A DNA stretch of 64,000 bases from Asterias rubens (GCF_902459465.1 NC_047067.1:186001-250000), one strand, 5' to 3'. Counted from the first letter of the stretch, positions 1,606 through 58,094 are shown. Translations and numbers: made by a program. Notes: generated by a model from the letters alone, not told the origin.

Positions 1606-3508
1606 GTAAGTACTAAGTAGTTTAGGGTTGTTTCATCCCCATATATGGTTATGCAACACCAGGTGCTCCTAATATGATGGGTAAGTACTAAGTAGTTTAG
1701 GGTTTGTTTCATCCCCATATGGTTACGCAGCACCCGTTGCTCCTAATATGATGGGTTAGTACTAAGTAGTTTAGGGTTTGTTTCATCCCCATATGGTTAC
1801 GCAGCACCTGTTGCTCCTAATATGATGGGTAAGTACTAAGTAGTTTAGGGTTTGTTTCATCCCCATATGGTTACGCAGCACCCGTTGCTCCAAATATGAT
1901 GGGTAAGTACTAAGTAGTTTAGGGTTTGTTTCATCCCCATATGGTTACGCAGCACCCGTTGCTCCAAATATGATGGGTAAGTACTAAGTAGTTTAGGGTT
2001 TGTTTCATCCCCATATGGTTACGCAGCACCTGTTGCTCCTAATATGATGGGTAAGTACTAAGTAGTTTAGGGTTTGTTTCATCCCCATATGGTTACGCAG
2101 CACCTGTTGCTCCTAATATGATGGGTTAGTACTAGGTAGTTTAGGGTTGTTTCATCCCCATATGGTTACGCAGCACCTGTTGCTCCTAATATGATGGGTA
2201 AGTACTAAGTAGTTTAGGGTTGTTTCATCCCCATATGGTTACGCAGCACCCGTTGCTCCTAATATGATGGGTAAGTACTAAGTAGTTTAGGGTTGTTTCA
2301 TCCCCATATGGTTACGCAGCACCTGTTGCTCCTAATATGATGGGTAAGTACTAAGTAGTTTAGGGTTGTTTCATCCCCATATGGTTACGCAGCACCCGTT
2401 GCTCCTAATATGATGGGTAAGTACTAAGTAGTGTAGGGTTGTTTCATCCCCATATGGTTACGCAGCACCCGTTGCTCCTAATATGATGGGTTAGTACTAA
2501 GTAGTGTAGGGTTGTTTCATCCCCATATGGTTACGCAGCACCCGTTGCTCCTAATATGATGGGTAAGTACTAAGTAGTTTAGGGTTGTTTCATCCCCATA
2601 TGGTTACGCAGCACCCGTTGCTCCTAATATGATGGGTAAGTACTAAGTAGTTTAGGGTTGTTTCATCCCCATATGGTTACGCAGCACCCGTTGCTCCTAA
2701 TATGATGGGTAAGTACTAAGTAGTTTAGGGTTGTTTCATCCCCATATGGTTACGCAGCACCCGTTGCTCCTAATATGATGGGTTAGTACTAAGTAGTGTA
2801 GGGTTGTTTCATCCCCATATGGTTACGCAGCACCTGTTGCTCCTAATATGATGGGTAAGTACTAAGTAGTTTAGGGTTGTTTCATCCCCATATGGTTACG
2901 CAGCACCCGTTGCTCCTAATATTATGGGTTAGTACTAAGTAGTGTAGGGTTGTTTCATCCCCATATGGTTACGCAGCACCTGTTGCTCCTAATATGATGG
3001 GTAAGTACTAAGTAGTTTAGGGTTGTTTCATCCCCATATGGTTACGCAGCACCCGTTGCTCCTAATATGATGGGTTAGTACTAAGTAGTGTAGGGTTGTT
3101 TCATCCCCATATGGTTACGCAGCACCCGTTGCTCCTAATATGATGGGTAAGTACTAAGTAGTTTAGGGTTGTTTCATCCCCATATGGTTACGAAGCACCC
3201 GTTGCTCCTAATATGATGGGTAAGTACTAAGTAGTTTAGGGTTGTTTCATCCCCCATATGGTTACGCAGCACCCGTTGCTCCTAATATGATGGGTAAGTA
3301 CTAAGTAGTTTAGGGTTGTTTCATCCCCATATGGTTACGCAGCACCTGTTGCTCCTAATATGATGGGTAAGTACTAAGTAGTTTAGGGTTGTTTCATCCC
3401 CATATGGTTACGAAGCACCCGTTGCTCCTAATATGATGGGTAAGTACTAAGTAGTTTAGGGTTGTTTCATCCCCATATTGTTACGCAGCACCCGTTGCTC
3501 CTATTATG
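1553..3508 (+). repeat. Intronic minisatellite, 73/74-bp unit x~27, derived from the exon 3' end plus splice donor
   Basis: Unit ggttgtttcatccccatatggttacgcagcacc(c/t)gttgctcctaatatgatgg-gtaagtactaagtagtttag; period 73 (e.g. 2161 to 2234); the first copy overlaps the exon at 1494-1605. Confidence 0.95.
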
Positions 3509-4169
3509 AAAGCAGTTTATTGTAATTAGTTTATCCCCTTTGAACATAGAATCCATCCATGTTCAGTGAGGTGAGAGGAGGTTCATTTACCACTTGTATC
3601 TCTGCTTATATTGATCGGAGAGGGCAGAATTCAAATGGACTCCAAAGAAATATCCAAAAGTCTCCTGCAGGCGATCTTTGGAGATTCAAACGTTTCAACA
3701 TACTTTTATTGATTTCATCAACGGTGGCTCCAGCAAAATAATTTCAGGGAATGCTTATTACCTAAGCAATCTTTAAAACAAGTAGGCGTTCAGACACAAT
3801 TTCTTTTCAATGTCATTACCAAAGTATGCCCCTATTTTTATAGCAGTAGTCTGGAAAACTGTATGTGCCATCATTCAGTATTATTTGTGTTTTTGTGAAC
3901 ATCTGGAGTAATGCATTGAACATGTTGTTGCCACATTGAAACCCTGGCCACAAATCTTTGTTAACAGAAAGAGGTGACTTTTTTTTTAATCAGGGCGAAT
4001 GGTCCACTGCACATGATTATCCTTCAGCTATATCCTAGCACCTTTGAACATTCAAAGTTTGAATGATGTGCTGGGATTGAGTAATATATGAAGTAAGGCT
4101 CAGGATAAATGAGACAGTCAACAAAGGGGGCAATCCATGGCTCACTGTTTACGTAGGCATCTTGAACTT

Positions 4170-5560: not shown

Positions 5561-6442
5561 TGTAACGCATTTCAGGAAATGAAAGATGTCACAATGTGTT
5601 GTTATTTTGGATAAGTATCAGAGTAATTACTCATTTAGTTTTTCAGGAAGCGTTTTTTAGTTGATATGTTATGTTAGTATAAAATGAAAAATATAGGGAG
5701 AAAACCCATTGAGTCAGAGCAGTGTCATTATTGTGAAAGAATACACAATTTGGTCTGTTTGCATAACGTTTGTATAAGTACAGAATCATGTGTGCAACTT
5801 AGATTTCGTGGACGTTGTTTCTTTTTGGGGGTGAGATTTCAGCAAACCACACAACTTGAACTAGTCTTTTCCACCTAAATAAGTTTCAATACAATTTCCA
5901 AAATAAATAATGTAAATAGTTGGGTTTTCCTGTAAAAGGACATCGCGCTGTAGTAGGAGGCTTTAAAGGTCTTTGGTTTTTGAAACTGTTTTAGTCCTTA
6001 CAAATGTACATGTAACCAATAAAACTAACAGGTGAAAATGTTTGCGTTTTTGAGATATTTCTGAAAATCAGGATTGAATGTCAACGCACGAAGAAAATTG
6101 TGGGTCATAAAAAAACTAGTATCTTTTGACATAACCACATTACTTCGAAGTGAATTGTGTCTCAAAGTGCTTCATACTGTTGAAAGCCGCTGTAGGCTTC
6201 TTACCAGAACTTGTTGCCAATAACTTTAAGAATGGTTACCAAACAAGTTACCTTAATAGATGGATCAAAACTATAGCAACAAAATAAAATACCTAATATG
6301 ACTTAATGGAGGATAAGGGCAGCCATTTTGTAACGGCAAGTTTATGTTCATATGTAGGTCCTTTGAGTGTAATGAAGTACATTCATGCCATGAACAGATT
6401 CAATTTAATTCCATCAATGTGGGGACTCTCTTGTCAGTTTAC

Positions 6443-6445
<3 letters not shown>

Positions 6446-6478
<33 letters not shown>
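6446..6478. repeat. (CT)n microsatellite
   Basis: Direct read. Confidence 0.95.
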
Positions 6479-6480
<2 letters not shown>

Positions 6481-8289
6481 AATGTTACAAAACATTTCTG
6501 TTTAATACTGAGTATGGACTGGTGAAAAAGCTTGTGGACTAGTGAAAAGACAAGGGCCAATTGCATGCTTGCAAGCACAAAAAACTTGCTAGGCACACAA
6601 TAGTATTGCCTAGCAGAAACAGGTTATCAGCCCAGATTCACTAAGTTTGCATTGTTTTGGCTGGTGCCCGACTAATTTTGTCCTTGTCAAAGTAATTTGT
6701 GAAGCAGTATTATCTGCCATTTGTATGAAATTTGGTCCAGCTAATTAGCTGGTCGTGATGCTGGCCTATCACGTAGAAGTTGAGATCACCAACAAACACA
6801 GGGACTTACAAAACTGGGTCCTTTTTTCAGGGTTCGTGTTCGTCCATTATATCAGGCTTTTGTTTGATTATGACAATGAAAATAAGAAATAGCTTCTTTT
6901 GGGGTGTTGGAATGCGCACAATGGTGTGAACTTTATATCTATACTATTAAAAACGTAACCCGCGCCATCTTGGATTGAAATTAGAAGGCCCAGTGGCCTG
7001 GCATCCTTGTGGAAATCAACAGGGTTGTGTGTGTGTAATTCAACACGTTTGTGTGGTTTCAGACGTCGTGTTGCAAGTCTACAAAACCCCGACCCAGACT
7101 CGCACTTACGAGTCATCTGATTGGAGGAAGTTTGGGCGGCGACCGTGTGTCAACCACTGGTCGATGTTGTTACCAGACTTCCTATCAATCTTTCTGACAG
7201 GTGACTCATTGTGGACAGTGTTTCGCAGATGGTTCTCCGGATTGGTTCACTCATTGCCCCTTGACCGCCCACCCGCCATTCGATCCGTCCTTTTTGGTCG
7301 GGTTACTTTCGTGTTGTACAAAGCATGGTTCTCCGGATCGGTTCATTCATTGCCGCGCAGGGTCGAAGAGGCTGGGTGCCAGGACAAAACCGAAACAAAT
7401 TTGCATTGAATGAAGTAAGTCACCGTGCTGTAAAGCATGTGAAATCGAGCCCAGCCTCTCATACATTCTGGTCAGTGTATGAGTGGTGGAGACAGGCCAC
7501 CTGTTGCTTGGTGAAGGAGGTCGCCGTGGGACCACTTTAGGTTGAAAGTGGGTTGCGACCTCGTGCTTCCAATAAATCTAAAAAGAGGCCGACGCTCTTA
7601 CCCCCCCCCCCGAAAAAAGCGGTGGTTAAACAAAAGTAGATAGATTTGTGGCACACTATGCACAGCATGTTCCGAAAACTCGCTTTATTTAGTGCTACAA
7701 CAACCCTATCTATCGTGGGACGTGACGCTCCATAAATCGCGATCAATAAGTAAAGAGTCCAAGATTCTAAAATCGTAGCATTATTGGAAACAAAGCAACA
7801 AATAATTCAACAAAGCAAAGCTGTTTACTTTCTTCCTTTTCCAGTCGGATAAACTCTAATATTGGCTGAGACTATTCAAGCCTTTTTAGTCGGATATCTC
7901 CTCTGCTATTTAGTACCGATGATTATTGTTGAGGAGGATATTATACCAGCCTCTTACGAGCCATTGGTCGAGTAGCTCGGCGCGGCTATTGACGGTGACT
8001 ATGGATTTGTTCGTGGAGGTACCTGATTTGTTGAGAAGGGAACCAAATACCACTAAATTGAAAAATATGGGCCTACAACACGACATCCACAACTAAACTT
8101 TAACATCGATACCAAGAAACATACATTATATCAATAATTCGCTCCCTTATGGGGAATTACCAAACTATACACCAAAACATCAACAAACAAACAAGTCGAA
8201 ATAATTACACTTAAAAGAAGTTTAAAGGGCATGGACAGAAAGAAACAAATTAATGGCAAAACACAGAAAAACCTCTGTCCCTCCAAATA

Positions 8290-11526: not shown

Positions 11527-12008
11527 CACTATTAGTAATTACTCCAAATAATTATTCGCATAAAACCTTTCTTGGTGACGAGTAATGGGGAGATGTTGAT
11601 GGTATTAAACATTGTGAGAAACGGCTCCCTCTGAAGTGCCATAGTTTTCGAGAAAGAAGTAATTTTCCATGAGTTTGATTTCGAGACCTCAGATTTAGAA
11701 CTTGAGGTCTCGAAATCTAAACGCACACAACTTCGTGTGACAAGGTGTTTTTTTCTTTTATTATTATCTCGCAAGTTCGATGACCGATTGAGCCCAAATT
11801 TTCGCAGGTTTGCTATCTGTATCTGTATGGTTGAGCCGGCAAAAAAATGTCTAAAGACACATCACACCAGTGCGCATATGCATATGTTGAGATACACCAA
11901 CTGTGAAGGCTAGTCTTTGACAATTACCAATAGTGTCCACTGCCTTTAAGATACACCAACTGTGAAGGCTAGTCTTTGACAATTACCAATACTGTCCACT
12001 GTCTTTAA
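11527..12008. mobile_element. Kolobok-type TTAA MITE, family 1 (left end truncated, right end tandemly duplicated)
   Basis: Matches the ~385-bp aggcagtggacactattgg...ccaatagtgtccactgcct family; ends cct|ttaa at 11945, then the last ~58 bp repeat to 12008. Confidence 0.85.
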
Positions 12009-16405: not shown

Positions 16406-17281
16406 ATGCAGTGGTCACTATTAGTAGTTACTCAAAATAATTAAGTAGGATTTGAAACTTTGCATGGTGGAAGTAAGATATAGAAAAGTTTGCGGTAACA
16501 CCATGTAATAACAATCTCTAAATGAGTTGGGGTGGTTCTGAAAAGAACCGTTGGATTAACTCGACGCTTCGATCAGTATGCTCTGATCGTCTTCTGGAGA
16601 ATGCTGGACTCTGATGCTGCATGCTGCTTAAGTACTGGGCGGCGGATCAGCGGTGATGCATGAAGGCGGGAAATAGAGGCGGGAAGTGATATCGATGATG
16701 CGTGGTGAAACCTGTTGTGGAGACTTGGGTGGTGTGTGGGGGGGGGGGGGGGGGTGTGCTCACTGAACCGTGTCAGTAGGAACAAGCATGCAGCATCAGA
16801 GTCCAGCATTCTCCAGAAGACGATCAGAGCATACTGATCGAAACGTCGAGTTAATCCAACGGTTCTTTTCAGAACCACCCCAACTCATTTAAAGATTGTT
16901 ATTACATGGTGTTACCGCAATCTTTTCTATATCAAAATAATTATTAGCATAAAACCTTTTTGGGTGACGAGTAATGGGGAGATGTTGAGGGTGTAAAACA
17001 TTGTGAGAAACGGATCCCTCTTAACTGCCATATATAGTTTTCGAGAAAGAAGTAATTTTCCATGAATTTGATTTCGAGACCTCAGTTTAGGAATTTGAGG
17101 TCTCGAAATCAACCATCTAAACGCACACAACTTCGTGTGACAAGGGTGTTTTTTTCTTTCATTATTATCTCGCAAGTTCGATGACCCATTGAGCTCAAAT
17201 TTTCACAGGTTTGTTATTTAATGCATATGTTGAGATACACAAACTGTGAAGGCTAGTCTTTGACAATTACCAATAGTGTCC
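16406..17281. mobile_element. Kolobok-type TTAA MITE, family 1, interrupted by the insertion at 16444-16933
   Basis: ttaa|atgcagtggtcactattagtagttactcaaaataatta [insert] aaaataattattagcataaaacc...caatagtgtcca. Confidence 0.85.
16444..16933. mobile_element. Head-to-head inverted pair of Penelope-like terminal repeats with a hammerhead-ribozyme-like motif
   Basis: ~145-bp inverted arms (16477-16625 and 16786-16933); 10-bp duplication aaaataatta at 16434-16443 and 16934-16943; motif CAGAAGA-C-GATCAG agcata CTGATC-GAAAC at 16814-16844. Confidence 0.55.
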
Positions 17282-17753
17282 AACAACGCGAGGCGTGCAA
17301 ATGCAATTTACGAATATTGAAGTCTTATATAGCGCACCTATTTTCCAAACAACCTTCAGAAAGATAGGTTATTGAGGTGATGAATTCCGAGAACCAATGT
17401 ATGTAGCACCTGAAAAGGGTTTACATGTACAAGGTGCTAGGGTGCATATAGCAGCTATATTCACAAATGGAAGGACGTGACGCACTTGTTACAAGTCACC
17501 TTTCACCTAACTGCATCTTGCCTTTTAATTTATCTTACTTACATCCTACAATAAAATACACATAATGTTGTTATAATATGCAGTGGTTACATGAATATCA
17601 GTGTGTTTAGATAAGCAGAATGGGTGGAGTTTTACGGGTTAGAAGTCTCTAGAATGAAAGTTTTATATCCAAAGCTAAAGCTTAAGTACAAGTTCAAATG
17701 AATCGATGAGAAATTGCTGTCACTTAAATAATTTTGGCACAATTCACATGCAC

Positions 17754-23747: not shown

Positions 23748-24646
23748 GGATAAGTTAGTCAATACAAAATGCCGTTCCGCCTCGTTTGCTCTACACAAGA
23801 TCGGACAAATTCGCCAGCTCATAAATAAAACTACAGCAGAAAAGCTCATCCATGCTTCGGTAATTACTCAAAATAGTTATTGGCATAGAACCTTACATGG
23901 TTATGAGTAATAGGGAGAGGTTGATGGTATAAAACATTGTGAGAAACGGCTCCCTCTGAAGTGACTAGTTTTCGAGAAAGAAGTTATTTTCCACGAATTT
24001 GATTTCGTGACCTCAGATTTAGAACTTGAGGTCTCAAAATCAACCTTCTAAATGCCGTAACTTCGTGTGACGAGGGTGTTTTTTTCTTTCATTATTATCT
24101 CGCAATTTCGATGAACGATTGAGCTCAAATTTTCACAGGTTTGTTATTTTATGCATATGTTGAGATACACCAAGAGAAAAGAATGGTCTTTGACAATTAC
24201 CAATAGTGTCCACTGCCTTTAAGAAAACGCGATTCAATTACTCCATTGGCTTCCTATTCATTCTCGCATCATCTTCAAAATTCTCCTTCAAACATTTCAA
24301 TGCAGTCGCGGAACTGGACCAACTTACCTGAAAGATCTACTAACTCCATACACTCCTACTAGAAACCTCCGTTCTGCTAACAAAGACACCCTCGTTATTC
24401 CTACAGTTACCAACAAAGCATATGGTCAACGTAGTTATCAGTTTGCTGCTCCTCACTTATGGAACAATCTCCCTCTACACATCAAACAAGCTACCACGAT
24501 CTCAAGTTTCAAGACTCTTCTCAAAACATATCTATTCAAATCTTCATATACTTAATTATTCTTTTGTTTTCCGCTGAGCGCTTAGAGACTTTCTTTTGGA
24601 GGTGTTAGGCGCTATAGAAATACGGTTATTATTATTATTATTATTA
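23748..24646 (+). mobile_element. L2-clade LINE 3' fragment (interrupted by a MITE)
   Basis: DKLVNTKCRSASFALHKIGQIRQLINKTTAEKLIHA, then LHWLPIHSRIIFKILL...RNLRSANK...YGQRSYQFAAPHLWNNLPLHIK...SFKTLLKTYLF*, ending in (att)n. Confidence 0.9.
23859..24218. mobile_element. Kolobok-type MITE, family 1 (left end missing)
   Basis: Family-1 sequence ending ccaatagtgtccactgcct|ttaa. Confidence 0.85.
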
Positions 24647-40735: not shown

Positions 40736-42675
40736 GGGTTGCTTGTGACCTTTAACTAAAGCACTGTGACTTCACTGACCTCCACGCACGGGCACTCACT
40801 GCATACGAATGTTATAATAGTTAAATACAAACGTCAACGTCACCTGACTGGTTATAAGAATAACAATTAAATTGTGGCAACAGCGAAAACAACGAAGACT
40901 GAAACTGACGCAATATATCCGGTAGCCAATGCCGGACAGCAATGCTTACCCCTGTTGCAATAATGGTACGGTCAAGATGTAGGAATTAAGGGTGTCCCCA
41001 CTAAAAAGACTCACATGGCATACAGTGCCAAGTGATTAACATAAAATAACATGAAACATAAAATAACAATAACAGCACTACCCACGAACATCCGACCTTT
41101 AATCTTGAAAATATTCCCTACACCTCTGGACACATTTTTGTACATAATCATTATTAATTTAGGGACCCGACACCAGGCTGGAAGTCAACAAGCCCAATGT
41201 CGCAACTGGGTATTAAAGCTTTCTCCTTCTGTGAGGTGTGTACTTTAAGTGCAGGTTGACTCAAGTGACCCTGCATCGAGGGACATACCGGTAGTTGGTC
41301 CAACACAGTCTCGGTATGTGTAGGCACGGTACGAAACATGCAATAATTGAAAAGAGCAAGGGGGTGCTATATCACCATGCATCGCCACAAGACAAGGATA
41401 CCCCCCCCCCCCCCTGTGAAAAGTAGCGGCTACACCACTTGTTATATACATTAAATCGCCTGCGGAAGCAACAGAGTTCAAACGAAACACAACACGATTA
41501 GGGTGCCCTTGAGAATCCGGTACACTGCCACTGCACATAATGTGTGGTGTGCTGGAATCCTCTATCAATGATGTGTGAAATGGAATTACACTCAACTCTG
41601 CACCAATAAACACAAAGTATTCTCAAGAAAATGTTATCAAAACAGACACAATTTTATCAGCAAATGGCAAAGATGATATGACAAACGTATACCTCACCTT
41701 GTCATTCATTATTACTTCAAAGATGCCGTATTAGCCGAGTTGAAGTTGCCGCTCAGATGCCATGTAGCGGAGTTGAAGTTGCCGCTCCTTTTATTTCATT
41801 GGAATCTGCCATCCACGTTCAACGTTCCCTCTGGAGGGCGCTCTACACATAAATAAATCTTCCGCATCTATCCGGCAGGCTTAATGAAACGAAGACAATG
41901 TGACTAAGTTTCGGGACCTGGTTTTGGGATTTGGGGACAGTGGTGACAGTGTGTATATCGATAGCATATGGGGAATGTGTTCCTGTGAAGGGGTTCACAA
42001 GTATAGCTAAGGATGGTTTTTAGAAAAGGTGGCGATATGAGTAATAATTGGGTGGGTGCTATGTTTACAGCAGGAGGGTTATATGTTGTTTTTTCAACGT
42101 AATGCCGATTCATGAGTAGGCATAAGTACAAAGAAAAACACAATGAAATTCACCTTTGTGAAAGTTTGCGCTGAAGTAAATAGCCACAAGCTGGTAACAA
42201 ATTGTATTTGCACAACCAATTGTATTTGCACAACCATGGGCGTATCCATCCAATAGCAATATGACCTTAAGTGCTGGCATACTAGGGATATCCACAAAGA
42301 TTTTGCCCCCAATTATGAGAAATTAACATGCCCTGGATGAGGAGGATTCAAGAGAGGGCGCTATCGAAAGAAGTTTGTACACAGCTCGCCGTATTTGGGG
42401 TGGAGGGGGGACGCAGAGCAACACCCAGGAGTCTGAGAAACATTTGAGTATGAATCATTTTTCAGATTATCCAAACCAGAAGGTATTCTTCACAAAATAA
42501 GTGACGCTATCAATAACTGCGATGCTTCTTCAAGTAAGTTTTTATGGTCATTACTTTTTGGAGTAGGTGCAGTTTATGATTCCTGTCACTCTAAGTGATA
42601 ACATCTTAATTAATGGATGTGCGAGTGGGTATCGTTATTTCCAGTAACACAACTGTATAAATATGATTATTTTAA

Positions 42676-43055
42676 AGGCAGTGGACACTATTGGTAACTG
42701 TCAAAGACTAGCCTTCACAGTTGGTGTATCTCAACTAATGCATAAAATAACTAACCTGTGAAAATTTGAGCTCAATCGGTCATCGAAGTTGCGAGATAAT
42801 AATGAAAGAAAAAAACACCCTTGTCACACGAAGTTGTGTGCATTTAGATGGTTGATTTCGAGACCTCAAGTTCTAAAACTGAGGTCTCGAAATCAAATTC
42901 GTGGAAAATTACTTCTTTCTCAAAAACTATGGCACTTCAGAGGGAGCCGTTTCTCACAATGTTTTATACCAATCAACCTCTCCCCATTACTTGTCACCAA
43001 GAAAGGTTTTATGCTAATAATTATTTTGAGTAATTACCAATAGTGTCCACTGCCT
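42676..43055. mobile_element. Kolobok-type MITE, family 1, full length
   Basis: TTAA|aggcagtggacactattggtaa ... ttaccaatagtgtccactgcct|TTAA. Confidence 0.92.
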
Positions 43056-45051
43056 TTAAGAACATTATTTATCGGACACCCTTTTGTAGCTTGCACAATG
43101 TGTACTTTATTCTCAACATACGCCACAATTAAATCATCTTTTTACAGTTCACAAAACATTCAAAAATAAAAACATTTTTTTATTTATAGTTTTTCGGTGA
43201 GTGGCACTTTTCCAACAACAAATAATTATGTTTTAGATACAAACTTGTTTGTTATTTGACTAATAAAGCGAAAACCGTCCATCCATAAACTAATTAATAA
43301 TTTACAATGTTGATTACATCTGACTTTGGTTGTGACTCTGTAACCTTGTTCTGACCCAATTCGGGTCAGGTGAAATGCTGTACAACATATCTGTGTCAAA
43401 GTCCACCAAATTTCACTTTGGACAAACTGGTGCATTTAACTAGTCGTAGTTCACTTTAACAACTTGAATCACACATAATGCTAGGTTATTCTGATTTATC
43501 TCAGGTTAAGCATGATCCATGATTCTGATTCAAACAAATCACCTAGAGTCAGCTTTAAAAGGTCCTTAACAAATAAGAACAACCATTTACCCCACACAAA
43601 TTAATGAAAGCCAAAGTACTACTAGAGTGTTATTTTGTGTTAACACTCAGTTTTTCCAATGGTGTCCATGGTTTGGAATCATTTGCAATAAAGAACAATA
43701 GATGGTCAGAAAATGGGTAATTGTTTTAACGGGAATGTTGCTTAAGGGGAATCAACGGGCTTCATGGCGTGACTGTCATGGGAGGGTTGGACAGCGCCCG
43801 GCCCTGTCAGTTCTCCCTTCCTCAAATGAGTTCGGAAAATGTACCAATAAATATGATTTGGTGCATTACCTACACATGCCCTCCTCCTACCCACCCCTCC
43901 TCCTACCCACCCCTCCTCCCAGTGAAACTGTTGGTGTTATTTACAAACAAAACATCCACATGGAACTTGACCGGGGCACTGCTGCACGAAGTTGTCTGAC
44001 GGGGGGAGGGGTGGTTGTAGACGGGGGATTTCGATTCGATTGCGTCTTAAAGTTATTACTAAATCGCAGGATGATTAAACTAGTCTGGGACAATCCAGAC
44101 CCCTCCCCCCCCCCCCCAACACACGCACGCACACACACACACACCATCTTCGCACCACCATCCGCGCACTCGCTAAATTTTAGTCTTTTAAGGCAAACGA
44201 ACAAAACATAAATTTGTTTTTAAATGTATATAACAGAAATACCAGAATGTCTACAGCCTTAACCTAGGTATACAAAACAAAGATATATATAAGACACATT
44301 ACTGGTGTTGTCTCAACTTTTGGTTTTTTGTTGACATCTGGAAAACAATAAATGCAGAAAAAACAACGCAAAGTTGTAGCGCCTAAGTTTCTGTGTGATT
44401 TGATCTTTTAAACTTTTAATAAAACCAAAATTGTGTTCAAGCACCTATTTTCTAGAAAGCTACTTTCAATGTGCTGGTTGGGGGGGGGGGGGTAACTCTA
44501 CAATACGATCAATGAAGAACAATCACGCTTGTTCAACACCGTTTTCTGAACCGCGAATGAGTACTTTTAGATCAGAATGTTGTAGCCAGTTGGTTTCGAA
44601 CTACCTTTTTCCTAATTTCATACGGAGAGAAAAGGCAGGTACATTTATCATGCTTATCTTGAACAGTAGAAACTTGTTTGTAATGTGTGTTAATTTATAA
44701 CAATAAATAAACTACAGTATTTATAAGGCGCACTTTAATGAAACAGAAAAACACTCAAAGGCGCCGGTCAAGTTTTGTCAAGATGTTAAAAAAGCAAGCA
44801 CTTTGTCGAAAATAACACGTTAAAGGCAGTACGTTCAAGTAGTAATTCAGGAACCAATATTGGCGGATCATAAACACGATCATGTCAATCATTATTGATT
44901 TAGTAATAAATATAATACCTTCACATAGACAATAAGTTGCATTATTGTTTTCTTAACACATGAAGAACAAATAAAATAAATACAATTTGACTATAATATA
45001 TGCAGAGTTGGTTTGTTTACACCACGGGAGTCCTTAACAATCTCCTGGCTT

Positions 45052-45239
45052 TTATCTCCGTGATAGCCATCCAACAAATGAGAAGTACTCCCTCTGTTTC
45101 TCCTCGCAACAGTACAACATCAACTCATTGGTCGTGCAGCGTTTCAGACAACACTCATCGATGATACCCCCACGAGCGCCTCCTCGTGACGTTCCGCGCT
45201 TGAAGAAATCCACGGCTGTTTTACGATCCATAAAAGGAT
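45052..45239 (-). CDS. Octinsulin-type insulin-like peptide, coding exon 2 (rest of C-peptide, A-chain, C-terminal extension)
   Basis: Acceptor gtttcatttctctcgcag|; (D)PFMDRKTAVDFFKRGTSRGGARGGIIDECCLKRCTTNELMLYCCEEKQREYFSFVGWLSRR*. Insulin A-chain pattern GIxxECCxxxC(x8)C plus an extra adjacent Cys; phase-1 join to exon 1. Confidence 0.93.
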
Positions 45240-45410
45240 CTGCGAGAGAAATGAAACATCGATGTAATTAGCAGATTGTTGATACTGAACAAACCCGCCC
45301 GTCCAGACTATGTTCTTGATCCATTGGCGAGTTGAATAAAGATCATGTTGGAAGGTTGTTTATAGACCGTTAAATAACCTCACACCAAACCCGTTTCTAA
45401 CTTGTTTTAA

Positions 45411-45787
45411 AGGCAGTGAACACTATTGGTAATTACTCAAAATAATTATTAGCATAAAACCTTACTTGGTAATGAGTACTGGGGAGAGGTTGGTAGTATA
45501 AACAATGTGAGAAACGGCTGCCTCTGAAGTGGAGTAGTTTTCGAGAAAGAAGTAATTTTCCACAAATTTGATTTCGAGACCTCAAGTTTAAAATTTGAGG
45601 TCTCGAAATCAAGCATCTGAAAGCACACAACTTCGTGTGACAAGGGTTATTTTTCTTTCATTATTATCTCCCAACTCCGACGACAAATCGAGCTCAAATT
45701 TTCACAGGTTTGTTATTTTATGCATATGTTGAGATACAGCAAGTGAGAAGACTGGTCGTTGACATTTACCAATAGTGTCCACTGGCT
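45411..45787. mobile_element. Kolobok-type MITE, family 1, full length (in the insulin-gene intron)
   Basis: TTAA|aggcagtgaacactattgg ... ccaatagtgtccactggct|TTAA. Confidence 0.9.
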
Positions 45788-47322
45788 TTAAATACAGTGT
45801 CACCAATTGCGGTTAATTGTTAATTACCGTCGACTTAAAACAACGCAATAAACCATGCCACCAGACAACTTGTTAATGTGTTTATAGCTCGACTGTCTAT
45901 AAGGCGTGGATGCTTTTAAAGATAACATCGCACGTTATTTTAATGTTGCTAGACACCTCAGCACTGAATGTCATTTTTAAAGCAGGTAAATTTTCCCGAG
46001 GTCTTGTCTAACATTGAGACTGCTGAGAACCCTATTGGTCAATAGCCCTGAGGCAAACAGCGCGTTATGTTTTTTTACCCGGAGGAATCGGAACAGCTCA
46101 GCTCGGTGGTTTAGGGTTAGTGAAAACGAATAGCCAATGCCATTCTGTCTGGCACTGTGTGGAGCGGGGCAGCCTGTGTCTGTGTACCTAGTGTCTGAAC
46201 AACGTAAACCCAAAGGAATATATTAATTTGACTTCCACATATTATTGCTTCACTGTGACCACCCCAAATTGGAGCTTGAATTGCAAAAGAACTCCTCCTT
46301 CGTGAGAAAGGTTAAAGCACTTATCGGGCTAGTCTTTGTCTGGTGTCTATACCCACGCCATATGGGTAGCCACGCCCCCCCCACCTTATAGCTCGATCAA
46401 TATTGCTATCTCGGTCAGAACCAATGAGACTGATTCAAATAAGAGCAAACACTGTTCTAAAACATTCAATAATTATCTTCTTTTTTTTCTCATGTAATTT
46501 TTGTATTATTGTCGAGCCTTGAGTGCCTGATTATTAAGTGGATATGTTGCATGTTATAATTATCATAAGTAATGTTGTCTCTCTATAATCACACAGTAAA
46601 TGTAGCATAGGAACAAATATCGCACCTCTGTCATCTGCGAAACTTAGTTCCGTATTAAAACGATATTCGCTTCTCAAACCCCGTGATTGCAATAAGACGT
46701 ACATTTAAATACTAACTCCCTTGTCAAAATTGATCCAGTTTTTCCCAACCCGGGTACCTTACCCATTTCTTGACCAGGCTGATCAGAAAAATGTGTATAA
46801 AAACTTATATAGGGCCTAACCCAATACACGCCAATCTTGACACAAATAGCATGTTAATACCAAGACTCAAATGGGTCAGACCTAAATCCGGGTCAGTTTT
46901 TTACCCGAACATGTTTATATTGTAGTTCAGTTTTTAGATTAAAAAATGCGAACATATCCCAGACCAATATTTCCCATAAACATGTTGTTATTGAACAAGA
47001 AAATGTGCTTTGAGAAAGAAACAAACAATAACAGGGTAATATAAATTAAGCGAATTTTAGTCAAAGCTTGTTTGAACTTGAGAGATTTATCTTTCGTGCA
47101 CTCTTGATAACTCTAAACATTCAGGCCTACGTGTGCGCGTATAAACATTGATGCATTGTTCAATTTATAAATGCGACGCATGAACAGCTTTTACAAGCAA
47201 AATGTTCCAAGTGATTGATTATTCTCGTTGTAACACCTTTAATGCTACGGAAAATTTGAACTCCCCATTCAAACATTGACGTTTGAAACTAAATCTGACT
47301 GACGGTTTTCTCTGTATCTTAA

Positions 47323-47672
47323 AGGCAGTGGACACTATTGGTAGTTGACAAAGACTAGCCTTCAAAGTTGCTGTATCTCATCATATGCATTAAATAACAA
47401 ACCTGTGAAAATTTGAGCTCAATCGGTCATCTAACTTGCGAGATAATAATGAAAAAAGAAAAACATCCTTGTCACACGAAGTTGTGTGCGTTTAGATGGT
47501 TGATTTCGAGACCTCAAGTTCTAAATCCGAGGTCTCGAAATCACATTCATAGAAAATGACTTCTTTCTCAAAAACTACGTTACTTCAGGGGGAGCTGTTT
47601 CTCTTACTCGTCACCAAAAAAGGTTTTATGCTAATAATTATTTTGAGTAATTACCAATAGTGTCCACTGCCT
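47323..47672. mobile_element. Kolobok-type MITE, family 1 (in the insulin-gene intron)
   Basis: TTAA|aggcagtggacactattgg ... ccaatagtgtccactgcct. Confidence 0.9.
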
Positions 47673-47836
47673 TCCAAGCGATCATAAACAGGACACTTTA
47701 TGTTCTGATGTGAAACAAAAATTGAGAATAGAATACGAGCAATTAAAACAAAGGGAGCCACTCGATCATCACTGTCATGTCCCGTACTTATAGGTCTTCA
47801 CCTGGGTAGCCTGTCTTACTTCTTAATAATACTCAC

Positions 47837-48047
47837 CAATTGTTTTGGTTTGTTGGTCGGATCTCTTTGCATATCCAGCATAACAACTGTCGCAGAGGGA
47901 CTGCAAGGTGCTGTATACATCAGAACAATACCAACTGTTGTTGGCACTAGCGTACCAGAAACACAGACAAAACACAATGGATAGAGCTGTGGCTTGACGG
48001 GCTTGTGGTAGGGTCAGGCGTAAATTGCCTCTTGAAGATTGCGTCAT
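47837..48047 (-). CDS. Octinsulin-type insulin-like peptide, coding exon 1 (signal peptide, B-chain, start of C-peptide)
   Basis: MTQSSRGNLRLTLPQARQATALSIVFCLCFWYASA-NNSWYCSDVYSTLQSLCDSCYAGYA-KR-SDQQTKTI; donor G|gtgagt at 47836; 211 nt, phase 1; the ATG directly follows an acceptor-like tttcttcgtatcttag. Confidence 0.92.
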
Positions 48048-48221
48048 CTAAGATACGAAGAAAGAATCAATGTCGGTTATTATAATGTGGTGGTTAGTTT
48101 GTATGATCATATCTAGGTAGCCGCTAGGTGGCTAGTACCGAAAATATTTGGAGGTGGACGAAAGAGAAAAGTAAACGCTTTAGGCTTTAATATGAACCCG
48201 TTTAAAGATACATTTCGAGCC

Positions 48222-48445
48222 TTTAAAGACACGTCTGGTCACTATTTGTAAATGTCAAAGACCAGTCTTCTCACTTGGTGTATCTCAACATATGCATAAA
48301 ATAACAAACCTGTGAACATTTGAGCTCAATTGGTTGGCGAAGTTGCAGGAGAACAATGGAAGAAAAAACGACCTTGTTACACAAGTTGTGTGCTTTACAG
48401 ATGCTCGATTTAGAGATGCTATAATCGTCTTCAGGGGAATGTCTT
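48222..48445. mobile_element. Diverged partial family-1 MITE
   Basis: gtcaaagaccagtcttctcacttggtgtatctcaacatatgcataaaataacaaacctgtg matches the family-1 body. Confidence 0.75.
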
Positions 48446-49714
48446 ACGCTCATACCATTCGAACTTTACCATTCCATGGCCCAACAGTAAAATAATCTTA
48501 CATAAGACAATTATTGGACTATTTTCCCAGCGAGATAAATGCAACAGTTGTTACAGCTCCGACTGAAGCTGCGAACTATGCAGTTCACAAGACTCGTTGG
48601 CATTAGGATGCCGAGTAGCGTGACGTAACCACGAGTCAATTAGCCCAATTGGCGTCAGGCAAGTATTGCAAGGAAATTGAAAAAAGAAGATACCCAGACG
48701 CCACCAGTCTGGACGTCATTCCTTGCTAAGGGTTACTTTATGTGAACGAACTGAGAGACAGATAATAATTGTAATCTTCGGAACGGCAGCTCGCTTCGTC
48801 CTAAATCCCATCTGAAAAACAATTCACTTAGCGGTGGTTCAGGGACCCCTTGACTCATGTGTATTTCTATGATCTTTACAGTTTAACTTTTCTAAAAGTT
48901 AAAGACCAGTATCCCCACTTGTTGTAACCCAATTTAAGCATAAACAACAACCCTCGAAATATTGGGCTCAGTTGATCCTCGAAGTTGCAAAAAATATTTA
49001 AACAAAATAAAAAATACCTTCGTTGCACAGAATGTTGTGCTTTCAGATGCATGAGAAAAGTTTCATGCCCGAAGCCTTTCTCATATTAATATTGCCCCCT
49101 TTCTCTCAAACTAGGGTGTCGTTTATTGCAATGTTGTGTGTTATCAGTGGTCTTTGCTCATCAGATGGATACATGTAAAAACACGAACAGTATTATATTG
49201 TAACTGATTTGCAATTTGTCTGAGAGTGTTTTGTCGTCAAACATGTATGGTTTAGAGTGTAAAACACCCTGGTGTTGCATGCTTTGTCAGCATTGTCTAT
49301 AATTATATGTGTACATTCAAACTAAATCAACTCAAGTTGTATTTAGCAGAGAAACGTATAGTATTTGGTCATTAGTAACAATTTTTGTGGAACAAGTAAA
49401 ATTTGGTTTTTATTTACTTATTTATTTATATATGTTTTTATATACTAGAAAAAGACAATAACAGTCAAACTGGATGGCTAAAAAATTATTAACATTCCTA
49501 ACTTCTTTGATTTTTGACCATTCAATTTAATGTTGCCACGCAATATAATGTTGTTTAATCTTTAACAGAACTCCTACATTGTGATTTGGAAACAGCGAGG
49601 TTAAAGAGAAAAAAAAACATCCGTACTTAAAAAGAACAATTGATGTTATCGTCAAAGTCGACAATTTTCTCACAAGTGACAACGATAAAACTACGATTAT
49701 ATGATTCAATTGGT

Positions 49715-49951: not shown

Positions 49952-50020
49952 CAATACATCTCAGATGGTTTGATCAATACATCTCAGATGGTTTGATCAA
50001 TACATCTCAGATGGTTTGAT
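49952..50020. repeat. Tandem repeat 23 bp x3
   Basis: caatacatctcagatggtttgat. Confidence 0.9.
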
Positions 50021-54879: not shown

Positions 54880-55227
54880 AGGCAGTGGACACTATTGGTA
54901 ATTGTCAAAAGCAAGCCTTCGCAGCTTGTGTATCACAACATATGCATAAAATAACAAACCTGTGAAAATTTGAGCTCATTCGGTAATCGAACTTGCGAGA
55001 TAATAAAGTTGTGTGCGTTTAGATGGTTGATTTAAGACCTCAAGTTCTAAATCTGAGGTCTCGAAATCAAATTCCTGGAAAATTACTTCTTTCTCGAAAA
55101 CTTTGGCATTCAGAGGGAGCCGTTTCTCACGATGTTTTTCACCATCAACCTCTCCCCATTGCTCGTCACCAAGAAAGGTTTTGTGCTGACAATTATTTTG
55201 AGAAATTACCAATAGTGTCCACTGCCT
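54880..55227. mobile_element. Kolobok-type MITE, family 1
   Basis: TTAA|aggcagtggacactattgg ... ccaatagtgtccactgcct|TTAA. Confidence 0.92.
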
Positions 55228-55282
55228 TTAAAAAAACAATCCATTCGAAATTCTCTGTTTCGGAGCGGGAGACGCAACGGCT

Positions 55283-55744: not shown

Positions 55745-56122
55745 TGGACACTATTGTTGTCAAAGACTAGTCTTAACAGTTGGTTTTACTCAACATGCAT
55801 AAAATAACAAACCTGTGAAAATTTGAGCTCAACCGGTCGTCGAAGTTGCCAGATACTAGTGAAAGAAAAAACACCCTTGTCGCATCATTGTCACACGAAG
55901 TTTTGTGCTTTCAGAATTGTTGATTTCGATACATCAAATTATAAATCTGAGGTCTCGAAATCAAATTCGTGGAAAATTATTCCTTTCTCGAAAACTACGT
56001 AACTTCAGAGGGAGCTGTTTCTCACAATGTTTTATACTAGCAACCTCTCCCCATTACTCGTAATCAAGAAAGGTTTTATGATATTAATTATTTTGAGTAA
56101 TTACCAATAGTGTCCACTGCCT
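55745..56122. mobile_element. Kolobok-type MITE, family 1
   Basis: tggacactattg...ttaccaatagtgtccactgcct. Confidence 0.88.
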
Positions 56123-57684
56123 TTACGGTATTAGCGACCTCAGTGCACGATTCTAGACGTCGCCTCTACCCATTTACCAATACGTCGCCGGAATGGGAAT
56201 CAATTATGTCACTGATTCGTTTCAAATAATGTGACGTCACAGATCGACACGAATGTGAACGGTTGTTCATTTCTTATTGATTATTGCCGTTAAGGTCTTC
56301 CGTTACTGCAAACTCTGATCCCAACCATAGCGTCGCTTTATAGAGTGGGCCCATAAACGAAAGGGAGATCATATCACCATTGGTTATGGATCCATACGTG
56401 GTGGGAATTCAAAAAGAGACACTCGACAGACAGTGTTTATTTCAGACTAATGTAAGTGGATCGTGGTATTTACTGATGACATGTTATAGATTCCAGTGAA
56501 TGCAATTTCCGCGATACGTTCTTAAAAATGGCTGATAATTATGCAGAAGTCGGAATTGTTTAATCATTTGACGTCATCAGTGCGCTCGCTTAGCCAATTA
56601 GCATGAATGATATGGAAAACTGGAGTAATGAGGACAACATCAGAACTTCCTCCTGAAATCGATCCAAATACTCATTTTTCTGTGTTCGTGGTGTTTTTTT
56701 CCCCATAAAATGGCGATTCCTTACGGAATTTTACGGAACATTGGCTTTTGAACAAAAAGTGGACTTTTTCTTGGAAGGAAACTTGACATAAACCTTATTT
56801 TAATGTTTTTGTAAAACAAAATCGTACTTTCGAGGAAAAAAACAACAAACAAAAAATAACTAAATTTATAAACCCTTATAAGGTGCTAAATAATTGGGTC
56901 TTAAAATTCATCACTGCAATAATCTATCTTTCTGAAAGTTTGTAATAATCAGCGCCTTGAGTACCTTGTTTGGTAGATACGTGCGCTATATAAAACTTTG
57001 ATATTATTATTATTATTAGTATTACTATTAAATTTTGAAAAAATAACAATGTGTAATCTAAAAGCCTGATATTCTAGACACAAAGATCCAACATTTAGTT
57101 GTTATCCCCTGTTGATATTAGATGTGATATATCCTTCCTTTAACCATTAATTTGCATTACACCGTGTGTATCCAGTATACACGCCAGTTCGTTCACTCTT
57201 TGTGAATGAAAGTCACGTTATCAATGTATGTTTCTGTTTGTCTCTTAAGGAATTAATTTGTTCGTTTTGTTTGTTTCTTGTTTTTGGTTTGTTTTTCTTC
57301 TTGTCCTCCATATATGTACAATGACCAAACACCGTGACTTCCCGTTCGGCAGGAAACCGAGGCAGACGACGAAACATCTGCCTTCACACTTTAACAATTC
57401 AAATCGATTGCAATTACAAATAATAACAGCCTAGTTCCATTGACCTTAACGCATATCCTTGGTGAATAATTTATATATTCCGTTTACAATGAAACGTCAT
57501 CAAAAAACATTTATAGGCAGCCGTACATGTGGAAATAATATGGCACTAGGCAGCTCGTATACATGACATTGATTTCTCACTATTGGTTCGAAACTAATTT
57601 CAAAAGTGCTTTAAAACAGTTCCGACGAATTGTGTGAGTAGAACGTTGGCACATGGTGTTTAAAATAATGTAGTTTGGTTCAAT

Positions 57685-57758: not shown

Positions 57759-58094
57759 TGACACTATTGATAATTACTCAACCAAACCTTACTTGGTAAC
57801 GAGTAATGGAGAGCTGTTGGTAGTATAAAACATTGTGAGAAACGGCTCCCTATGAAGGGAAAGAAGTAGTTTTCCACGATTTGGTTTCGAGACCTCAGAT
57901 TAAGATTTGGAGGTCTCGAAATCAAGCATCAGAAAGCACACAACTTTGTGCGACAAGGGTATTTTCCTTTCAATATTATCTCGCAACTTCGACAGTGGCA
58001 ATTGAGCTCAAATTTTCACAGGTTTGTTTATTTATTAATCTGTTGAGATACACCAAGTGAGAGGACTGTTCTTTGACAATTGTCAACAGTGCCT
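57759..58094. mobile_element. Kolobok-type MITE, family 1, diverged
   Basis: gacactattgataattactc...gacaattgtcaacagtgcct|ttaa. Confidence 0.8.

Follow-up and report, generated by a model that had tools for sequence, protein, structure and literature searches.

Structure and Transcription of the Locus

The window analyzed here is a stretch of 64,000 nucleotides (nt) of the genome of the sea star Asterias rubens (GCF_902459465.1, NC_047067.1:186001-250000), and all positions are counted from its first letter. Between positions 48047 and 45052, the minus strand of the window carries a spliced gene encoding an insulin-like precursor of 132 amino acids (aa). With near certainty, the locus is the octinsulin gene of A. 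rubens, RefSeq LOC117291630. The features of the gene, including those in its untranslated regions (UTR), are as follows:

47837–48047, minus strand: coding exon 1, comprising the ATG, a 35-aa leader, the B chain (N36–A60), KR61-62 and the start of the C-peptide; it ends with the first base of codon 71
45240–47836, minus strand: phase-1 intron in the C-peptide region, GT..AG, 2597 nt, with two inverted copies of an abundant interspersed repeat inside; its splice joint was found in four sequencing runs
45052–45239, minus strand: coding part of exon 2, comprising the remainder of the C-peptide, KR84-85, GTSRGGARG, the A chain, the tail EEKQREYFSFVGWLS, RR and the TAA stop
44000–45051, minus strand: 3′ UTR, at least in part, according to RNA contigs
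48048–48049, minus strand: acceptor AG of a 5′ UTR intron, directly before the ATG; the contigs depart here from the genome into an exon outside the window
44739, 44420, 43184 and 43111: candidate poly(A) signals

In the genomic sequence, the start codon ATG at 48047 is immediately preceded on the minus strand by a TAG stop. The 3′ end of exon 1 reads ...ACA ATT G at 47837 and is followed by the donor GTGAGT from 47836. On the acceptor side, the minus strand reads ...TCTCGCAG before the AT at 45239; the entry into the 3′ exon is ...TTTCTCTCGCAG, then AT CCT TTT ATG... from 45239, and the frame closes with the stop codon TAA at 45054–45052. Joining of 48047–47837 and 45239–45052 yields 211 + 188 = 399 nt, which corresponds to 132 codons and a stop. 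The intron of 2597 nt has GT..AG ends and phase 1, codon 71 being split as G|AT. The original prediction, made from the sequence alone, had proposed this very splice, the 132-aa precursor and a phase-1 intron in the C-peptide; the minus-strand read, the reading frame and the RNA across the junction bear out all of these. It had also described the gene as hidden from the ORF (open reading frame) track. The gene is real, but this description turned out to be trivial, since the gene is merely an ordinary spliced one.

Four runs (X1, X2, X4, and X16), coming from four different studies and bearing two organism labels, were mapped on the region 44000–49000. X1, X2, and X4 each have a single contig that spans the joint 45239|47837, which skips 2597 nt (CT..AC read on the plus strand and GT..AG on the minus), and three raw reads of X16 span it as well. 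The transcript carrying the 47837–45239 junction, on which the original prediction had made its gene model depend, is present in all of these runs. The X2 contig (914 nt) covers 44819–45239 and 47837–48049, and the X4 contig (632 nt) covers 45030–45239 and 47837–48049. The depth of the unique part of the intron (45837–47172) was 0 in X4 and X16, 0–8 in X2 and approximately 3–7 in X1. In the last run, the coding exons reached a depth of 5600–7600, which is about 1000-fold above that of the intron.

At the 5′ side, all contigs depart from the genome at 48049, with 28 to 280 further nucleotides (a 28-nt loose end in X1; 209–280 nt unplaced). This departure, together with the extra letters, indicates a second intron located in the 5′ UTR, with the acceptor AG at 48049–48048. 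A search of the window for the 5′ exon, using the 28-nt loose end (up to two mismatches), its 12-mers and the N-terminal extension of the RefSeq protein in six frames, did not find it; the exon therefore lies outside the window, at a distance of more than 15.9 kb upstream. The 5′ UTR intron ends exactly at the conserved ATG.

As for the 3′ side, one contig runs without interruption from the coding sequence (CDS) to 44819, and others with a comparable depth extend to 44168 and as far as the edge of the mapped region (44000). The 3′ UTR thus appears to be longer than 1 kb, judging from the RNA contigs that continue at near-CDS depth to this edge. It is overlapped by a plus-strand ORF of 169 aa (43702–44211), which has no Pfam match and is for this reason probably spurious.

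Architecture and Relatives of the Precursor

The translation of the two joined exons agrees with the chains that had been claimed for the precursor, namely, a leader, a B chain with three cysteines, KR, a C-peptide, KR, an A chain with five cysteines and an aromatic tail ending in RR. The leader (residues 1–35) has a long n-region and a hydrophobic core at about residues 20–32, reads ...YASA ahead of the predicted cut and holds two further cysteines, 27 and 29. It is followed by the B chain (residues 36–60, N36–A60) with Cys41, Cys52, and Cys55, by KR at 61-62, by a C-peptide of 21 residues (63–83) and by KR at 84-85. The second dibasic site is followed by GTSRGGARG and then by GIIDECCLKRCTTNELMLYCC with Cys100, Cys101, Cys105, Cys114, and Cys115. 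The C-terminus consists of a 15-residue aromatic tail, EEKQREYFSFVGWLS, and RR131-132.

The order of these parts stands as predicted, but the "linker" placed before the A chain was a guess, as no dibasic site is found there in A. rubens. Residues 86–95 (window positions approximately 45184–45155, minus strand) read GTSRGGARGG in A. rubens versus GTARG(S)TRRG in Patiria and Acanthaster. In comparison with these two genera, A. rubens lacks the dibasic site before the A chain and has one inserted Gly. Immediately ahead of the A chain, the other two sea stars carry a dibasic RRG and A. rubens carries ARGG, which makes the N-terminus of its A chain less predictable. Because the dibasic RR is replaced by ARG-G, the A chain of A. 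rubens may start at G86 or after R93; judging from these aligned sequences, the A-chain N-terminus may differ between sea stars.

According to the Pfam analysis, the whole 132-aa protein matches the Insulin family (PF00049) with 29.7 bits and exon 2 alone with 27.7 bits, the gathering cut-off being 23 bits. The A-chain pattern CC-x3-C-x8-C and the B-chain cysteines (Cys41, Cys52/55) are present, and CCLKRCTTNELMLYC aligns to the A domain of insulin-like growth factors (IGFs). A phmmer search with exon 2 against 1.84 billion representative sequences gave seven proteins; among the best five matches that are not artificial fusions, four have the same eight-Cys pattern. When the Patiria match and then a family profile were compared with 5.8 billion proteins, matches were found only in Ambulacraria. 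In the library of 1.84 billion proteins, too, the homologues were confined to Ambulacraria. Those from the larger library belong to Patiria miniata, Acanthaster planci, Asterias rubens, Amphiura filiformis, Apostichopus japonicus, Ptychodera flava, and Glandiceps talaboti. Orthologues with this eight-cysteine framework thus occur in sea stars, a brittle star, a sea cucumber and acorn worms.

The eight cysteines of the B and A chains (C41, C52, C55, C100, C101, C105, C114, and C115) are invariant in 7/7 full-length ambulacrarian sequences. In the alignment of these seven sequences, W39, Y56, R62, F73, A79, F82, G95, Y113, and Q119-R120-E121 are also invariant. The protein shares with the other ambulacrarian octinsulins the B-chain pattern W-[YFH]-C-x10-C-x2-C-Y, the A-chain pattern CC-x3-C-x8-CC-x3-QRE and F..A..F in the C-peptide, and with the other echinoderm octinsulins it shares KR behind the B chain. 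Its identity is 67–68% to the sea star sequences and 26–42% to the other ambulacrarian octinsulins. The branching of a small tree constructed for the family is that of the species (echinoderms 92/98, Asterozoa 81/95), which orthologues would be expected to show.

A comparison of the family profile with all PDB sequences showed the highest similarity to the A domain of IGF-I and IGF-II (E about 1e-5), with the ungapped pattern GI[IV]DECC-x3-C-x8-YC, which is common to octinsulin and the vertebrate IGF-I/IGF-II A domain (PDB 1bqt and 1igl). From this ungapped alignment, Cys100, Cys101, Cys105, and Cys114 correspond to A6, A7, A11, and A20, respectively, and Cys115 is the extra cysteine of the A chain. 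IGFs differ from octinsulin in being single-chain proteins with six cysteines and D/E domains, without KR processing sites, whereas in octinsulin A20 is directly followed by a Cys and the B chain contains a third Cys. An insulin fold with one extra disulfide, as predicted for octinsulin, is found in molluscan MIPs, cone-snail insulins, nematode beta-type insulins and the eight-Cys multinsulins. In the molluscan MIPs, cone-snail insulins and nematode beta-type insulins, the extra cysteines are located at positions other than those of octinsulin.

Outside Ambulacraria, a putative octinsulin-like peptide was described in Xenoturbella bocki. Its describers report (eLife 2024;13:e94948) that the peptide shares the atypical Cys pattern of octinsulin, which they put forward as a possible shared derived character (synapomorphy) of Xenambulacraria.

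Identity with the Published Octinsulin

The octinsulin class was defined by Veenstra in 2021 (PeerJ 9:e11799, PMC8286064) and named after its eight cysteines. The 132-aa protein and its displayed CDS are those that Spreadsheet S1 of that paper gives in its Asterias rubens sheet under "Octinsulin, XP_033629354.1, corrected"; the CDS of the window was compared with the published one by eye, and no mismatch was seen. In addition, residues 23–154 of the RefSeq protein of A. rubens (P0009, "uncharacterized protein LOC117291630", 154 aa) were found by script to be the 132 residues encoded in the window. The gene is thus already known, having been described and named octinsulin in 2021. Since that publication already covered the gene with its name, intron and relatives, and the locus is present in RefSeq, finding it here carries no weight as a discovery.

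According to the same paper, octinsulin is present in all ambulacrarians, is single-copy in echinoderms, has KR convertase sites and has a phase-1 intron as its sole coding intron (PMC8286064). In agreement with this, the RNA contigs are colinear with the genome on 48047–47837 and 45239–45052 with one joint, and KR61-62 and KR84-85 flank the C-peptide as in the class definition, cleavage being predicted at both sites. The assignment to the octinsulin type that had been suggested from the sequence is upheld by the published entry, and the framework of eight cysteines, the KR sites and the one coding intron, of phase 1, all fit it.

In the window itself, a search of six frames revealed no CC-x3-C-x8-C motif besides that of octinsulin. 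By the same A-chain Cys motif, no IGF or dilp7 neighbour gene was found in the six frames of the 64 kb. In sea urchins and acorn worms, IGF, octinsulin and dilp7 are syntenic, and this synteny was lost in sea stars (Veenstra 2021, PMC8286064), with which the result for the window is consistent.

Proposed Processing and Fold

The following course of maturation is proposed for the precursor. The leader would be removed co-translationally after ...YASA35, and the B and A regions would fold with the three canonical insulin disulfides (A6–A11, A7–B7, and A20–B19). A fourth disulfide is predicted to connect Cys115 (A21) to Cys52 or Cys55 of the C-x-x-C of the B chain. If Cys52 is B19, then Cys55 is B22, which lies one helical turn further on and adjoins A21 in insulin structures. 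The convertases PC1/3 or PC2 would cut at KR61-62 and KR84-85 and free the 21-aa C-peptide, and a carboxypeptidase would trim the basic residues, including the C-terminal RR. The expected product is a two-chain hormone whose A chain is extended at the C-terminus.

The expression of octinsulin was reported to be greatest in nervous tissue, being also significant in gut or stomach (PMC8286064); in a sea urchin, it reached 752 reads per million in the radial nerve and 26 in the gut (Veenstra 2021, PMC8286064). By analogy with the expression in the sea urchin and other echinoderms described there, the hormone of A. rubens would be secreted from neurons and gut endocrine cells.

Alternative Readings of the Locus

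It was considered whether the gene could belong to another ambulacrarian class of insulin-like genes, that is, an eight-Cys multinsulin, a dilp7 orthologue, an IGF or an RGP/GSS gene; this is very improbable. Eight cysteines do occur in some multinsulins (Veenstra 2021), but in the eight-Cys multinsulins of A. rubens the extra cysteines stand ahead of the B chain and two residues past the second Cys of the B chain, and a single Cys closes the A chain. A protein-atlas feature search ranked an arthropod "insulin-like peptide 7" cluster first (score 0.90); in the dilp7 orthologue of A. rubens, however, there are only six cysteines and the CC-to-C spacing is longer, and genes for dilp7 and multinsulins contain an additional phase-2 intron, with a spacer, between the signal peptide and the B chain, which are encoded here by one exon. 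The closest solved relatives by sequence are IGFs, yet these have a long E domain, a phase-0 intron and no KR sites, whereas the present precursor has two KR sites, a 15-residue tail and one coding intron. RGP/GSS peptides have six cysteines and no tail, the last Cys standing at the end of the A chain or next to it (GSS-1/2 of A. rubens), in contrast to the eight cysteines and 15-residue tail found here. Moreover, Veenstra (2021) lists the same sequence as octinsulin. The classes are separated here by the cysteine framework, the intron pattern, the exclusive matches of the profile searches and published trees, our own tree being composed of octinsulins only. The probability that the two exons are a chance pair of ORFs without function or a pseudogene is practically negligible: each exon taken alone is a short ORF, but the spliced transcript occurs in four runs, with X1 exon depth about 1000-fold over that of the intron, and orthologues with invariant cysteines are kept across two phyla, the frame being intact. 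This possibility was rejected on the basis of the spliced RNA, the conserved orthologues and the invariant cysteines.

Nothing speaks against the identity of the gene, but several points limit its reading as the source of a 132-aa octinsulin precursor that yields a folded hormone. X16 is a declared RNA-Seq run, and X1, X2, and X4 are RNA by guess only; they were taken as RNA because contigs without the intron can hardly arise otherwise. The tissues of the runs are coded, so that the expression evidence amounts to transcription without tissue. While transcription, splicing, family membership and conservation are matters of observation, the maturation steps, the pattern of disulfides and the cells of secretion are predicted for A. 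rubens. The AlphaFold2 program gave a predicted local distance difference test score (pLDDT) of 49.1 for the full precursor and of 54.5 for its mature part, and both models are too poor to support the fold or the fourth bridge, which for this reason stays a prediction. These low-pLDDT models show helices where the B, A1, and A2 helices are expected, and when compared with the PDB by Foldseek, they matched nothing at E below 3. Finally, the RefSeq model of LOC117291630 is 154 aa long, with 22 residues added from the upstream exon outside the window. It could follow that the true product is this 154-aa form, translated from an upstream ATG, and that the 132-aa N-terminus is wrong, which we regard as unlikely. 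Apart from the presence of the 22-aa extension in the RefSeq protein, the loose end of the X1 contig, read on the minus strand, encodes the last residues of the extension, ...GHTSSK, in frame with the ATG at 48047. Against it, the first residues in the orthologues of Patiria and Acanthaster are the homologous MT(x)S..RG.LRL, in support of the 132-aa form; the extension would shift the start of the hydrophobic core to approximately 42 residues in; and Veenstra (2021) labelled the RefSeq model "corrected", a label due to the extension from the upstream exon. To judge from the orthologues, the extension of 22 residues seems to be either an annotation artefact or an upstream ORF. The mature hormone is identical under either start codon, and the assignment of the locus to octinsulin is retained.

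Receptor and Significance

The original prediction had stated that the receptor and physiology of octinsulin were largely unresolved, and this holds for the literature. Veenstra (2021) considered octinsulin to be the orthologue of arthropod gonadulin (Dilp8), arguing from synteny and from the lack of another candidate (PMC8286064). In that account, octinsulin acts on an LGR3-type "gonadulin receptor" and GSS/RGP acts on a receptor tyrosine kinase (RTK) (PMC8286064). Arthropod gonadulin/Dilp8 and vertebrate relaxins share with octinsulin the insulin superfamily and the single phase-1 coding intron, and the octinsulin gene of sea urchins and acorn worms stands in an IGF/dilp7 cluster, like insect gonadulin (Veenstra 2021). 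Gonadulin/Dilp8 and relaxins differ from octinsulin in having six cysteines and little sequence similarity to it.

In a more recent study (BMC Biol 2025;23:59, PMC11863921), the phylogeny grouped RGP1 and RGP2 with Dilp8 and relaxins, and in cell assays both RGP1 and RGP2 activated RXFP/LGR3 in A. rubens and A. cf. solaris (PMC11863921). The octinsulin sequence was not found in the portion of the supplements of this study covered by our search (PMC11863921). A 2025 review lists octinsulin by name only. Because RGP1 and RGP2 activate the LGR3-type receptor, the published assignment of a receptor to octinsulin is now in doubt.

The candidate receptors would be an LGR-type G protein-coupled receptor, as proposed by Veenstra, or an insulin RTK, and the IGF-like A chain (GIIDECC...LYC) makes the latter a reasonable alternative. 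A tentative suggestion, somewhat less probable than its opposite, is that octinsulin may be an orphan hormone acting via a receptor other than the predicted one, namely, an insulin RTK or an orphan GRL101-type LGR. If it acted via an RTK, octinsulin would be the echinoderm counterpart of a neuro- or enteroendocrine insulin, which would fit the IGF-like A chain and the expression in nerve and gut. Selectivity would in that case be determined by the fourth disulfide together with the conserved QREY..F tail.

Octinsulin, a predicted hormone, is kept across Ambulacraria, perhaps also in Xenoturbella, and is very highly expressed in the sea urchin radial nerve. The 2025 result on RGP1/2 and LGR3 conflicts with the 2021 model of octinsulin as the gonadulin/relaxin counterpart, so that two accounts of insulin/relaxin evolution are opposed here.

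Repeats and Surrounding Sequences

The region contains an interspersed repeat of approximately 390 nt, with 83–89% identity between copies and an internal 45-nt palindrome, which occurs in at least 10 copies in the 64 kb. The copies are located as follows:

45336–45836: repeat copy
47312–47673: repeat copy, inverted
48222–48416: repeat copy
42671–43064: repeat copy
23859–24222: repeat copy
16932–17282: repeat copy
55745–56125: repeat copy
11527–11816: repeat copy
57784–58091: repeat copy
55006–55233: repeat copy

Two inverted copies are located within the octinsulin intron, with arms of approximately 150 nt that are 83–93% complementary. The depth of the repeat is enormous in all four runs (word depth 1e5–1e6; 2000–3700 reads in X16). 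tRNA and Rfam scans of the gene region gave no match to the intronic repeat, which is probably MITE- or SINE-like (miniature inverted-repeat transposable element or short interspersed nuclear element).

No Pfam match was obtained for six neighbouring ORFs with a length of 100 aa or more. The gene is flanked by short perfect tandem repeats at 43879–43919 and 49952–50000 (16 nt × 2.6 and 23 nt × 2.1, respectively).

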